60,082 bases of DNA from Octopus bimaculoides (GCF_001194135.2 NC_068983.1:32444061-32504142); one strand, 5' to 3'. Positions 11,201 through 17,200 are shown, numbered from the stretch's first letter. Notes: generated by a model from the letters alone, not told the origin. Numbers and translations are program-made.

Positions 11201-14200
11201 AAGAAAAGTCAGAACTACTGGGCTCCAGGTTGAAACAATAGAATCTTTTACACGATGGTGTAAAATGCTCATATTTTCGAAAACAGCATACAGAATTGTA
11301 TGAATTTTTTTATGGAGAAAGATGGCATTTGTTTTTGTTGTGATGTTGAAGGACTCCTACGTGAGATGGGGTACGGACATAATCCTGAAGAATGGAGATT
11401 CCAGCCAGCAAAGCAAACTTAAAAGCTGTTTTGTTGCATAATGGCAATCAAAAACATTCAATACCACTAGCACATGCTGTAGGATTAAAGGAAACTTATG
11501 AATTAATGGATGAAATTTTGCACTTGATTAAATATTCTGAGCACAAGTAGAATATATGCGGGGACTTAAAAGTTACTGGTTTGCTTCTTGGGTTGCAAAT
11601 AGGGTATACAAAGCATCAGTGCGTTTTTGTGCCTTTGGAACAGCAGAGATGACAAGCATCACTATGATCAAATAGGGTGGCCAAAGAGAAGTGATTTCAC
11701 TTCAGGGAGATACAACGTTAAATATACCCCTGTAGTTGATCCCCAGAAAATTTACCTTCCTCTCTTAAACTTGGCTTCTTTAAGAATTTTGTTAAGGCCA
11801 TGAATTAAGACAGTGAAGGATTCAAATGTCTCCGAAACATTTGTTTGTAGCAAGAGTGAAGTTAAGATCAAAGCTGGTGTTTTTAATGGATCAGAAATTC
11901 GCACACTAATTTGTGATAGGACTTTCAAGAAAAATTAAACCCGGTAGAGAAAACTGCATAGGAAAAGTTTGTTTCTCTTGTAAAATGTTTTTTTGGAAAT
12001 GAAATATCATCTAACTACGTTACAATTGTGAATGATTTTTGAAAGCTTATGAGGAACTTGGGCAAGAATGTCTCTAAAAATTCATTTTCTCCACTCTCAT
12101 CTTGACTTTTTTCCACCCAATATGGGTGATGTAAGCGATGAACATGGTGAACGATTTCATCAACAAATCAAAGAGCTAGAAAGCCGCTATAGTGGCAGAC
12201 TTACACCAAACATGCAGACGGACTACTGCTGGTTTTTAGAACGAGAAACGGAATGCAACATAAGCGTAAAAGAAGACATCAAAGCTATTTTTGAAAAACA
12301 TAAAACTAATAAAATTTACTTTACACTTTTGTTTTGTGTTTTATTGGTTTTAGAGCTACCTGTCCACCTAGTTGCTATTGTTCTTATACCGAATAACTTT
12401 AATTTACGCTTAACATAACATTCATTTTATTTGTTATGAATTTTCACATTATTGTAATTTTGATAGCAGTATAATGATGATGGCGCAAAAACGTCACGTA
12501 CTAGAACAAAAATAATTGCAGATTCGGAATCAGTGCTCCCAAATTACCTATGAGCACCATTTCGTCTGATAGTAGCAAAAATTTTGTTGCCTAGTGTTAT
12601 CAGCTAATACTGATCGAAAAAGTTTTAATCTTTGCATTGTGTGACACGCCTTCCACATTCTGTTATCTATTGAGTCTGTAGAGAAAAGAAAATCTGAATA
12701 AGCCATTCCAACAGAGAGAAAATAGATATAAAAGGGTGGAGGCATTGCTTTATTCTTGTGGGGCTCAACCCTTCTCTAAAAATAATAAGAATAATATAAC
12801 ATTGCCGGTTAGTAAATTAATGAAGGTCGGGCAATTTGGCTTTGTTTATTGCACACATTTCTGCGAGACAGACTCAATGTAGATTGAACTAGCATTGTTA
12901 ACTGACTGAAAGGTTAGTGGATAAAAAATCCATATAATTACAACATCAATAGAATAAATAAATTACCTTACAAATAAATCGTTTATTGTGTTTCTTTCTT
13001 TGAATTTAGTTACATATTCTTTTACTGTTTTGTGCCTGTAAAAAAAATCGCGGTCAATGGTGCCAAACATTTTTGCCACATTGCTACCTTCCTGATAGTC
13101 AGCATACTCGTCGTGAAGTTCTGAAGTTACATTTTCCAAAGGAAGCGAGAATTTCGTATAATTAGCATATTCATAGTAAGCGTAGGAATCACGGTCTTGA
13201 ATGATACATTGCCAGAGCAATGCGACAGTTTCGTTGAGTTTAGTCCAGCTGTAATGGAGCAAAGAATTACGTTCACGCAGTTCTTCCATAAATACTTGCA
13301 GGTTCATCATATTCAAAACGTGGTTAGGAGAGTGCAATATGGCTGCCAAAGATATTTTCGTTACTGATGTGTTCGTCAAGTATCTAATGATATCAGAAGA
13401 GACAGCGAAAACATTTTGTGATGACGTAAGATTTAGATGTTTTTGTTCAATTTGGAGACTGGTGAAAGAATTGTTCATATCGTTAATAATTTGCCGAATG
13501 TTAGTCAATGAAGTTTGTAATTTAGCTGCTTTTGATTTGATAATTCCAAGAGCATATTTTGTAGTATAACCATTGAAAACACTTTTAATGGAATTAAATA
13601 ACTTGGACAAGTGAATAAATTTGTCTGAGACCTTCGTAAATTTTGTCAAATTAAATCCAGTATCTCTTGTATCCAACATATCAGAGAAATTAAACAAACA
13701 TTCTTTTAAACTAATTAGTGTATTACTCAATCTAAGGCTATAATCACTTTTTGATTGGTTTAATTTGATGGTTAGTAACTGCTTAGGAACAGCATAAAAG
13801 TTATGACTTCTCGGTACTTTAAGATATCTATAACGAAATATACCTACTCCGCTTGTTAACGACTGATAATATTCTGTAAAGTTGCCTTCCGCTTTTTCGA
13901 CCATGTTCAGTTTGGTCTCAATATTCATTTTGATATTATGGATTAACATTTCAGAAGCTCGTTGGTTACTAGAGTTGTTTATAAATTCATCCAGTTTCAA
14001 AAACATATTTTTCAGTGTGTAAATGTAATTAAAAAAATCAAAACTGACGTGGTGGAACGTCCGTTCAGCTATGGCTTCCCACGGCCGCTCAAAGTTCTTT
14101 TCTATTAAGTACTTCTGATAATTAATCAGGAACAGTTTTGAAGCATACACTTTCTCCACTTTCTTGGAAATATTTTGAAGAATGGCTAAATTAATTTTAA

Positions 14201-17200
14201 TTGTCGTTTCAAGTTTGTACAGCATCACCGTTCGAAAGGCTACATTTGATGCATTGAAATTTAGGAGCATATTTCGAAATTCCGAGATTGATCCAGCGTC
14301 CATTCTGTGCTTCACTTCTTTAGCATTTATAAGCTTCTGCTTCACGTCAGCCATACGTGGATCCATAATCAATTTACTAACTTTATTTTCCGAATGTGCG
14401 GTATATGAAATTGAAGGATCGAATAGAAGCATGTTACACGGCAAAGGACAATCGCATTTTAATTGAAAGGAGTGGAATTTGTCTGAAAATGGAAATGAAG
14501 ACTATAAAATATCAGTCAGCATATATTTGAGATAAAAGATGAAATAGTAGATATGACTAACCCATACACTCTTTCGGCAAGCATAAATTTCTCTCAATAT
14601 GGACATAGACACATCCGTCCATACACACGTATAAATTATATGTTGTAATTGTTAGTGTGTAAATGTAAAACAAACAACTGGCCGAAATATGGTTAGCGAG
14701 AGAGAGAGAGAGAGAGAGAGAGAGAGAGAGAGAGAGAGAGAGAGAGAGAGAGAGAGAGAGAGAGAGAGAGAGAGAGAGAGAGATGGGAGGGAAATAGATA
14801 AAGGCAATCATATATAAGGTAAGTAAGTAGGTAGGTAGATAGTCAAAGCAAGCCTGAAAGAACAGGAAATGAGAGAGAGAGAGAGAGAGAGATGAAATTG
14901 AAGCAGTGGGACAGAAAAAAATATAGTTGCGGAAAGAAAAATTGAGATTGGGGTCAGACAAATTCTTCCGAGCTTCGTAGGTTCACTATCCATACATATC
15001 TATATGTGTGTGTATAAGTCTGTGCACGTGCATCAAGCTACGTGTATGTACGGGTATATGCATGTGTGTACGTGAATGGTAGTGGTGGTGGTGGTGATGA
15101 TGCGTGTGTATGTGTGTGTGCATACATTCGTATATTTATTAATGGATGCATTTGTTGTGCGCGTTATAGTGGACAGACGGATGCCTAAAATCTCACAGAT
15201 CCTATGGTGCCAACTGTGGCGCTAACCATAATAACAGGATATCAATAAAAATAGCAGATGTCGTAGACTCTGACCTGCTGTACTACACAGATAAAACGGA
15301 TAAATTGCATTACAGAGGTCTTGTCATATTGTTAGGATCACAAAGTGAGGTCACACTCTTAGATAATACCTGTCACAAAATAAAAATAACAACGGTTTCC
15401 AATTTCGACACAAGGCTAGCAATTTTAGTGGAAGGAGACAAGTCAATCACATCGACCCCTGTACTCAACTGATACTTATTTTATCGACCCTGAAAGGATA
15501 AAAGGTGAAGTCGACCTCGACAGAATTTGAACACAAACATTTTTGCTTATGGACCCCTAGATTCCTATTTTATTTTATTGGACTCCCATAGCTATTCGCC
15601 GTTTAAAAAAAAATCCTGCTATGTTTCTATAATGAAATATAAGGAATTGTAAAAAGAAAAAAAAATGTTAAAATATTTTGTATATTGTAGAAGTGTACTC
15701 AGTTCATTGCACGTAAAATTTAACAATGAAATCTTATGCGGACCCCCATGGGCCATGTGGACTCTGGTTGAGAACCACTGGTTAGAACTGATGAAATTCC
15801 ACTAAGCACTTTTTCCGACGTGCTAACGGTTCTGCCAGCTCACCGTCTTAACAACAACAATAATAATAAATAATAATAATAACCCTGTCTACTGGAAGCT
15901 CAAGGACTCACATTTGGAAGGGATGGCACTAGTCGATTACATCGACCCTAGTACTCAACTGGTACTTAATTTATGACCCCGAAAAGATGAAAGGCAAAGT
16001 CGACCTCGACGGAATAATAATAATAATAATAATAATAATAATAATAATAATAATAATAATAATAATAATAATAATTTCATTAAAGCAGTAAATACATGGG
16101 CTATATCCTTTTTGAAATGGGCAATAGTCGAGCTACAGAACTTGGACAGAAGAAGTAGAAAGCTGGTAATAATGAACAACGCATATCCCTCTAAAAGTAA
16201 TAAAGAGAGACTCTGCCTACCAAGAAAGGAAGCTGAGAATTACTAAACACTGAAGACACTCTTAGTACTGCGATATTGGGTTTGAAAAGTTATGTTGTGC
16301 GGAGTGAAGAAAGAATGCTATCTGCGGCTGGAGATGCCCCCAAAGTTATTGAGACAGTAAGTGAATTCAAGGAGAGTAGGAAGAGTTACAGAACATGCAG
16401 ATAGAAATAAATGGAATTCTATGGCCAATTCATGCAATAAACCAAGAATGTTGAAAGTAAAGAACGCTTGATTTAGCTGACAGATAGAAACCTGAAATGA
16501 GAGACCGAAGAGCTAATTATAGCTGCTCAGAAACAAGCTATTAGGACGAATCTGATAAAGGCCAGAATTGACAGAACTCAGACAGCAAATATAGAATCTG
16601 CAGGAAAGGAGACGTTAGTATCAATCATCTCTTGAGCGAGTACAGTTAGCTAGCACAAAAGAGTATAAGCACAAGCATGGCTGTGTAAGTAAAAGAATGC
16701 ATTGGAATGTTAGCCTAGTGTGTAGCTTCGAAATAACTGGAAAGTGGCATATATACGAACCAGAGGCTGTGACAGAGAATGAAAATTACAGGATCTTCCT
16801 CATAAGACTGACCATACTATTGAAGCAAGAAGATCAGATATGATAATATAGGACAATATGAACAAACAGTGTAAGATGTTAGATTTTGCTATTTCCTATG
16901 ATAACAGATTCGATACCAAAGAAATTTATAAAAAAATGGAAAATATCAGGATCTAACCAGAGAGCTGAAGAAACTGTGGAAGACCACAATTATTCCTGTA
17001 GCAGTAGGTGCATTTGGCATAACACCTAAAATGCTACCTAAAAGACTAAAGATATTGGAATCGAGACTCGCATTGTCGATTTGCAGGAAAGTACAATCTT
17101 AAATTCTGCAAGAATCCTAAGAAAGATTCTTGAGGTTTGAAAACACTTGTCAGTGTCTGTCTGTCAACCTGTCCGCCTGCCCACCTGTCTGCCTGTCTGT

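Follow-up and report, generated by a model that had tools for sequence, protein, structure and literature searches.

DEG/ENaC family channels have one pore scaffold in common that is gated by protons, peptides, force or proteases, and the route by which force or an extracellular partner reaches the gate is debated. In the ASIC1 structure, the knuckle forms the top of the ectodomain, and in human ASIC1 the last thumb cysteine is followed by strand beta11 after 35 residues (a length taken from the hASIC1a sequence, of which the alignment described below confirms both ends only). Proton activation depends on His73 in the wrist and Lys211 in the palm (mouse ASIC1a numbering; PMC10507113), and a published phylogeny scores ASICs as lost in molluscs (PMC9949801). 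The present analysis concerns a stretch of 60,082 nucleotides from Octopus bimaculoides (GCF_001194135.2 NC_068983.1:32444061-32504142), hereafter called the window. The segment at 12967-14482 on its minus strand is very probably exon 8 of the gene for an ASIC-like DEG/ENaC subunit, encoding a genuine, translated and ancient orphan domain placed in the knuckle.

The host gene is O. bimaculoides LOC106880211, a 10-exon DEG/ENaC gene located in an AT-rich window (~35% G+C) that contains many microsatellites and is broken by assembly gaps. All ten coding exons lie inside the window, on the minus strand, and a splice-aware rebuild allowing GT-AG sites only gave a product of 923 amino acids (P0002; XP_052822091.1, XP_014785558.1, UniProt A0A0L8I926) that is exactly identical to XP_052822091.1 and A0A0L8I926. 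RefSeq names this product 'uncharacterized protein', and UniProt 'Acid-sensing ion channel 1'. The gene and the whole of exon 8 are already annotated; the novelty is the reading of what exon 8 encodes.

The minus-strand frame at 12966-14501 comprises 512 open codons and is the longest in the window (the runner-up has 183 codons), with a probability of ~1.2e-16 of arising by chance at the window's base composition. Exon 8 occupies 1516 nt of it, read as 2 nt, 504 codons and 2 nt, between the acceptor ttccattttcag/AC (ttttcag/AC, start at 14482) and the donor TGTAAG/gtaattta (end at 12967), where the slash marks the exon boundary. The junction of exons 8 and 9 reads DLFV-S-ENIL, with the codon of Ser847 split by intron 8. 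The insert-bearing exon encodes 14 N-x-S/T sequons and 2 cysteines besides the thumb motif. No transmembrane (TM)-like stretch was found in the insert by Kyte-Doolittle analysis in 19-residue windows, its maximum mean being 1.07 versus 2.49 for the first TM helix (TM1) and 1.66 for the second (TM2). The original prediction had already proposed the 504 codons without stop, the exon limits, the exon 8-9 junction and these counts of cysteines, sequons and TM-like stretches, all of which hold, as does its distance of 490 residues between the last cysteine of CDCPLPC and ENIL.

The position of the extra sequence in the channel can be read from comparison with solved structures. Against all PDB chains (phmmer), P0002 matches ASIC1 best (E 3e-57), followed by ASIC5 (1.6e-45), FaNaC (1.7e-28) and ENaC (~1e-25). 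The ASIC1 match falls into two blocks: P0002 33-368 corresponds to residues 22-381 of the hASIC1 chain, covering TM1, finger, palm, thumb and CxCxxPC and running into beta10, and P0002 841-911 corresponds to residues 399-469, from 'KSEQYIG-ENIL' (alpha7 and beta11) through TM2. Between these blocks lie 472 residues in the octopus protein versus 17 in ASIC1, the latter being ASIC1's alpha6. The octopus segment ENKVSKLIM takes the position of the ASIC1 stretch 'SKASAKYLAKKF' between the two HMMER domains. By this alignment, an insertion of ~455 residues separates the two helices of the knuckle, following alpha6 and preceding alpha7; the original prediction had placed it there, and both the HMMER flank blocks and the helix given by AlphaFold2 (AF2) at exon residues 31-39 agree with it. 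Its location at the apex of the trimer, also suggested earlier, would follow from the ASIC1 structure. P0002 has two hydrophobic peaks only (residues ~55-64 and ~881-887), and because the insert is flanked by these only two TM segments, it is extracellular. The glycosylated extracellular placement suggested earlier is consistent with this topology and with the sequons, which number 3-14 per insert across the family described below, one of them being present in 90% of members.

The channel core is of the usual DEG/ENaC type. P0002 carries a PF00858.30 (ASC) match and has the expected layout of two TM helices, one large extracellular domain and an HG motif (SLHGL, residues 40-44). The ENIL...YE...AY...DxGG series aligns to the beta11-beta12 and pre-TM2 motifs of ASIC1, and in the degenerin-site region ('LxCDxGG') a cysteine stands just before DxGG in most members. 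The selectivity filter (P0002 878-892 region, exon 10) is G-S-S in three octopod group-1 orthologues (O. bimaculoides, O. sinensis and Argonauta), and G-A-S, with one G-A-T, elsewhere in the family. In these residues, the pore resembles the standard, Na+-selective pore of DEG/ENaC channels. The residues of ASIC proton activation are not conserved, H72/H73 aligning to P86/V87 and K211 to S (HMMER alignment; exons 2 and 5). As H73 and K211 are absent, a classical ASIC-type proton gate is unlikely, and the octopus channel is probably not a classical proton-gated ASIC. Closest similarity does not point to the FaNaC subfamily, the FaNaC structures scoring 1.7e-28 and 1.7e-12 versus 3e-57 for ASIC1. 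Despite the published loss of ASICs in molluscs, the core of the clade is, by PDB-match ranking, closest to ASIC1 among solved channels, and the clade could be a derived molluscan counterpart of the ASIC lineage scored as lost. An 'ASIC' candidate of O. vulgaris issued from a nociceptor screen (c28071_g1_i1 / MN081801; PMC12919962) could not be matched to LOC106880211.

Coding status was assessed by comparison with another octopod. A word-indexed search of a 5.8-billion-protein index gave one close relative, P0001, on genomic-type contigs of that animal (L001), with 84.6% identity to O. bimaculoides and 81.6% to O. sinensis. The profile version of this search gave 4 relatives, and the family emerged by exhaustive phmmer. 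Exon 8 and L001 share 90% nucleotide identity with no gaps in 1516 nt, versus 54% in the upstream intron (essentially unalignable) and 81%, with many gaps, in the downstream one. The ratio of non-synonymous to synonymous substitution rates (dN/dS) between the O. bimaculoides exon and the octopod contig is 0.34 (dS 0.23, dN 0.079), and it ranges from 0.20 to 0.48 in the six blocks of 84 codons. Since dN/dS is below 0.5 in every block, purifying selection acts along the entire insert. The original prediction had named a ratio near 1 as grounds for its own rejection; the value of 0.34 is of the opposite kind.

The phmmer search of 1.84 billion cluster representatives yielded 130 matches with E <= 1e-3, including 74 with E <= 1e-10 and 27 with E <= 1e-30. 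The long matches (850-1050 amino acids) are DEG/ENaC proteins matching at the same place and, wherever enough sequence is present, the match sits in an ASC (PF00858) context. Around 35 matches are named, all of them from Lophotrochozoa, and no named match outside this group was found among these representatives. Their labels are 'uncharacterized', 'ASIC-like', 'del-10-like' or similar. Cephalopods (Octopus sinensis, O. vulgaris, Argonauta and Sepia pharaonis) contribute two paralogue groups. Bivalve members include Pecten, Argopecten, Mizuhopecten, Ostrea, Saccostrea, Mytilus, Ruditapes, Mercenaria, Mya, Tegillarca and Solemya, and gastropod members are Haliotis, Patella, Babylonia, Batillaria, Nucella, Littorina, Plakobranchus and Aplysia. 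The nemerteans Lineus and Tubulanus have several genes each, the annelids are Capitella and Paralvinella, and the brachiopod Lingula has a partial homologue whose match covers most of the insert. From the last thumb cysteine to beta11, nearly all molluscan models count 490-498 residues, nemerteans 494-554 and two annelids 534-536. There is little doubt, therefore, that the insert defines a DEG/ENaC clade that spans Mollusca, Nemertea and Annelida and has a partial match in Brachiopoda. The earlier guess that it may mark a clade instead of being unique is thus borne out, by molluscs, two nemerteans, two annelids and, partially, a brachiopod.

In the alignment of 41 full-length members, gaps make up 1% of the insert, the mean frequency of the top residue is 0.38 in the insert versus 0.55 in the core ectodomain, and the thumb CxCxxxC cysteine columns are 98-100% conserved. 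Conserved motifs of the insert are KNFxRxRxAMEERT, N-x-T (N542), PIFxYKFxxxPRxxNxxxVPKxLL, SKSxFY, FFxExRxRGQ and IWxxIxxDEDxxxYY, and N200 (exon numbering) is nearly invariant in a 42-sequence alignment (A1). The window protein falls within the clade as defined by an all-alpha domain of ~455-520 residues between alpha6 and alpha7, together with the motifs and the spacing. No conserved furin or dibasic site was found in or around the insert in family members, and a protease-released inhibitory tract as in ENaC was set aside on this ground.

The second cephalopod paralogue group contains the O. vulgaris 'degenerin del-10' (P0157), Argonauta P0005 and the Sepia pharaonis 'ASIC2' (cluster P0154/P0184). 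Its insert is 27-28% identical to that of the window protein, and the group is somewhat closer to other molluscs, its insert identity to them being 22-34%, where the window gene has 21-24%. Unlike the window's group, this second group is amply covered by mRNA-type contigs.

Exon layout and transcripts can be followed in the relatives. Dozens of open reading frames (ORFs) of ~500 amino acids occur on short contigs; many start near CxCxxxC, and most stop one residue beyond the octopus exon end, as '...F-x-R/K stop'. This shared ending corresponds to read-through of a conserved phase-2 donor AG/GTAA, so that the one-exon layout and the donor position are conserved. Other contigs hold full coding sequences. 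L004 (a contig of SRR29271460, 3474 nt) has an uninterrupted coding sequence of 929 amino acids running from TM1 through the insert to TM2, with a 491-residue spacing; its cluster comprises the Sepia pharaonis 'ASIC2' and 11 Logan members, most of them on contigs of ~3.0-3.8 kb. P0147, of a Pecten/Argopecten cluster, is a full coding sequence of 957 amino acids with the insert, on a 3791-nt contig. Because coding is uninterrupted in a gene family of about ten exons, these cuttlefish and scallop contigs are best read as spliced mRNAs that keep the insert. The insert is also kept in every retrieved RefSeq isoform (Ostrea X1-X5, Haliotis rubra X1 and X2), with a spacing of 490 or 491.

The fold was predicted with AF2 from the exon 8 fragment of one subunit, as a monomer only, using A1. 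The mean predicted local distance difference test (pLDDT) is 88.7 and the predicted template modelling score (pTM) 0.76, with 359 of the 504 residues at or above 90; from the single sequence, the pLDDT is 36. Low confidence is limited to the first ~30 residues (thumb end and beta10), whose context is missing in the fragment. The model is all-helical, with helices at 42-60, 62-145, 149-167, 170-210, 247-270, 278-305, 307-366, 385-427 and 475-496 (exon numbering); the longest, 62-145, has 84 residues and would measure ~12.6 nm if straight. A conserved non-helical segment (211-223) is followed by short helices at 224-242. As the pTM is high, the model argues for a compact multi-helix bundle over a floppy single helix, in line with the helical bundle originally suggested.

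Known domains offer no counterpart. Pfam analysis of exon 8 and of the 42 members recognised ASC flanks only, the exon 8 flank match being weak (residues 8-64). The family profile against all PDB sequences gave marginal matches only, the best with an E of 0.0028, and these were designed helical bundles or coiled coils. Foldseek gave a best E of 0.03 against the PDB, with template modelling (TM) scores of 0.14-0.19 (ciliary filament proteins, MukB elbow, Rad50, TTYH2), and a best E of 0.0095 against BFVD (TM score 0.19). No counterpart of the insert exists in the solved DEG/ENaC channels compared (ASIC1/2/5, ENaC alpha/beta/gamma/delta, FaNaC, PPK, BRTNaC1 and PDPNaC1; chains of 421-679 amino acids). 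The claim that the architecture is without solved precedent therefore stands by sequence and by fold, and the structure search turned up no known domain at the same position in a characterised DEG/ENaC, a result that would have spoken against the original prediction. Internal duplication of the insert was rejected, hhalign between sub-segments giving at most 32% probability. A transposon origin was likewise rejected, there being no similarity outside DEG/ENaC proteins, and the transposon fragments of the window being intronic and unrelated. Neither a description of the knuckle insertion nor family accession numbers were found in the searchable literature. The insert is an orphan domain, and the proteins that carry it are public as unnamed predictions.

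Table 1. Exons of the rebuilt gene and elements encoded by exon 8, in window coordinates.
Feature	Position	Strand	Description
Exon 1	51421..51590	-	Start codon, cytoplasmic N-terminus, HG motif (SLHGL); rebuilt model
Exon 2	48759..48926	-	TM1 and beta1; Kyte-Doolittle peak 2.49 at residue 58
Exon 3	44420..44593	-	Finger; rebuilt model
Exon 4	41537..41655	-	Finger and beta-ball; rebuilt model
Exon 5	36989..37170	-	GTENGLRLTLNVEQYEY...; palm and beta-ball; rebuilt model
Exon 6	34609..34762	-	VIGLPKPRGVCEDRK...CGCRLSYMPKVN; palm to thumb start; rebuilt model
Exon 7	20416..20472	-	DSVPLCSLVSFITCYIPQR; thumb; rebuilt model
Exon 8	12967..14482	-	1516 nt; P0002 342-846; thumb end, beta10, alpha6, insert of ~455 amino acids, alpha7
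Last thumb cysteine motif CDCPLPC	14436..14456	-	P0002 351-357; aligns to ASIC1 'CVCEMPC'
Beta10-equivalent NMLLFDPSISYTAH	14394..14435	-	P0002 358-371; HMMER-hASIC1 alignment stops here, 'NLTRYGKELSM'
Alpha6-equivalent knuckle helix ENKVSKLIM	14364..14390	-	P0002 373-381; AF2 helix, exon residues 31-39
Inserted domain proper	12993..14357	-	~455 residues, P0002 384-838; all-alpha (AF2 prediction)
Conserved sequon N542-F-T	13875..13883	-	Sequon in 90% of 41 members
Alpha7-equivalent NTINDLFV	12969..12992	-	P0002 839-846
Exon 9	9062..9153	-	(S)ENILEIAFFYKQLSYEIITDQVAYDFFSLM; beta11-beta12
Exon 10	8144..8283	-	(C)DTGGALGLLLGSSILTIFELADF...KKRVENL, then stop codon; TM2 and C-terminus

Assembly gaps (runs of N) are found in the window at 701-800, 4403-4917, 17435-17492, 18209-18469, 23467-24325, 54235-54411 and 55219-55328; the larger intragenic ones are intronic, and the coding exons of the rebuilt model are all free of them. 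Broken reverse-transcriptase ORFs at 28513-30286 (minus strand, intron 6) and 59178-59603 (minus strand, upstream of the gene) match RVT_1 and zf-RVT of the non-LTR (long terminal repeat) retroelement type, and represent transposon debris without relation to the insert. Two sets of ORF fragments without Pfam match, at 2368-3322 (minus strand) and 10741-12415 (plus strand, intron 8), are 48% identical to each other over 75 amino acids (tblastx) and have a '...MSLKIHF...' stretch in common; they probably belong to a single unclassified family of repeats or transposases, with copies in opposite orientations. In intron 7, ~200 nt upstream of exon 8, a long (GA)n/(TC)n microsatellite occupies 14690-14785 and may be a break point of the related octopod's short-read contigs.

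Regarding function, three rigid, glycosylated helical masts, one per subunit, would stand above the channel. To the surface of such a mast an extracellular partner (matrix, mucus, cilium, cell coat, or a protein or peptide ligand) would dock or be tethered, and displacement of the mast, or the binding of the partner, would act via beta11-beta12 and TM2 on the palm strands, by which DEG/ENaC pores are gated. At its C-terminal end, the insert is separated from beta11 by 8 residues and from TM2, via beta11-beta12, by ~40, and its N-terminal end follows beta10 and alpha6; as the two ends adjoin these elements, displacement or binding would reach the palm directly. One study describes the N-glycans of the alpha-ENaC palm and knuckle as required for shear-force sensing via the extracellular matrix (PMC6955349). 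The proposal that the insert binds a partner or serves as a tether, and in this way modulates or drives gating, is tentative, and somewhat less than an even chance is given to it. A wider idea is that of a lophotrochozoan channel class in which a built-in mast, 12 nm long or more, would tether the pore to matrix, cilia or an opposing cell; such channels would act as self-contained mechano-, contact or ligand sensors, and might be the counterpart of the mollusc ASIC lineage. This wider idea is more doubtful still. Identity and mechanism taken together, with most of the weight on identity, form a likely account.

Several points weigh against the domain being a translated partner-binding or tether module. 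The presence of exon 8 in octopus mRNA is deduced from selection, the RefSeq model and the mRNA contigs of paralogues. Octopus and other molluscs have 21-28% identity in the insert versus 42-50% in the core, a faster evolution that a scaffold or spacer would explain as readily as specific binding. No conserved cysteines were found in the insert in the 41-member alignment, which is unusual for an extracellular domain. The fold model covers a fragment of one subunit, and the dimensions of the mast, its orientation to the channel, any trimer contacts and its function are presumed. One alternative makes the insert an assembly or spacing device, in which three inserts would bundle at the three-fold axis and set subunit co-assembly or a fixed distance, with no direct part in gating. 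Very long amphipathic helices in an all-alpha fold would suit such a device, and so would the weak best Foldseek matches, which are coiled-coil or long-bundle proteins. The near-fixed length of the insert across molluscs suggests a ruler-like role, and the paralogues, which form two groups in cephalopods and number at least three genes in Lineus, may have to be sorted. Nevertheless, the monomer alone is predicted to be compact (pTM 0.76), so partners are not needed for it to fold, and ordinary DEG/ENaC channels trimerise without such a domain; this device is considered unlikely.

A further alternative, also improbable, has the insert folded back on the finger, thumb and acidic pocket as a lid that inhibits its own channel or senses a ligand, with allosteric gating like that of the ENaC GRIP domain, or has it form a new neuropeptide or small-ligand site. 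Gating diversity through peripheral extracellular insertions is common in DEG/ENaC channels, for example in the ENaC GRIP and the FaNaC finger, according to two sources (PMC13488063, PMC11026163), and four of the strongly conserved motifs (KNFxRxRxAMEERT, PIFxYKFxxxPRxxNxxxVPKxLL, FFxExRxRGQ and IWxxIxxDEDxxxYY) may form a site or interface. However, the insert is devoid of a conserved furin or dibasic cleavage site, its 84-residue helix far exceeds the ~8-nm ASIC ectodomain that would have to be covered, and neither Foldseek nor the PDB profile search gave similarity to any ligand-binding fold. Finally, the exon could be an annotation artefact or a passenger, such as transposon-derived sequence that was exonised or retained outside the working channel. 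The deduced nature of its inclusion in octopus mRNA, the transposon debris in the introns of the gene and the lack of a known domain in the insert would agree with this, but beta10 and the last thumb cysteines share exon 8 and its frame, and for this reason skipping the exon would destroy the channel. Moreover, the frame is under purifying selection and free of indels. Four phyla have kept the insert (Brachiopoda with a partial match only), its length hardly varies among molluscs, mRNA-type contigs of relatives contain it, and it has no match outside the DEG/ENaC context. An artefact is thus highly improbable.

As far as sequence comparison can tell, the locus encodes a DEG/ENaC channel with a new, conserved and orphan extracellular domain that is real and clade-wide. 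A 455-residue domain joined to alpha7, beta11, beta12 and TM2 would offer a natural experiment in how force or partner binding is coupled to the gate. The animals that bear the insert are richly equipped with organs of mechano- and chemosensation, for example the suckers of octopus, statocysts and the osphradia of molluscs. Being an orphan fold family kept in four phyla (Brachiopoda partially), it is a well-defined target for cryo-electron microscopy and for electrophysiology of deletions or swaps. The clade may also bear on the published conclusion that ASIC-like channels were lost in molluscs and, if the tether reading is true, these channels would be unlike any characterised DEG/ENaC.

Compared with chicken and human ASIC1 (PDB 2qts, 6ave and 9e4a, among others), the octopus subunit has the same HG motif, two TM helices, thumb cysteine ladder, order of beta10, alpha6, alpha7 and beta11, and G-x-S filter. 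It differs by 472 versus 17 residues between beta10 and alpha7, by the replacement of H73 and K211 with V and S, and by the G-S-S filter of octopod group 1, its ASIC likeness being a matter of PDB-match ranking. TTYH2 (PDB 9g71, 7p54) also has a long, glycosylated, all-helical extracellular bundle and appears at Foldseek ranks 12 and 25, but these matches are non-significant (E 0.13-0.31, TM scores 0.09-0.19) and constitute an analogy of shape, not homology. Like ENaC, the octopus channel is a DEG/ENaC member with a peripheral extracellular addition, which in ENaC tunes gating, and its sequon-rich insert lies in the knuckle, as do, with the palm, the alpha-ENaC glycans described in the shear-force study (PMC6955349). 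Whereas the ENaC GRIP is small, beta-rich, located in the finger and cleaved by proteases, the octopus insert is a predicted 455-residue all-helical domain of the knuckle without a conserved cleavage site, and the octopus core matches ENaC far less well (E ~1e-25) than ASIC1. The MEC-4/MEC-10 channel of C. elegans is a DEG/ENaC thought to be gated via extracellular and intracellular tethers, and a tether is also the role tentatively favoured for the octopus insert. The extracellular links of the MEC complex, MEC-1, MEC-5 and MEC-9, are proteins in their own right, and the degenerin-specific extracellular regions are elsewhere in the fold, whereas the candidate tether of the octopus channel would be part of the subunit itself.

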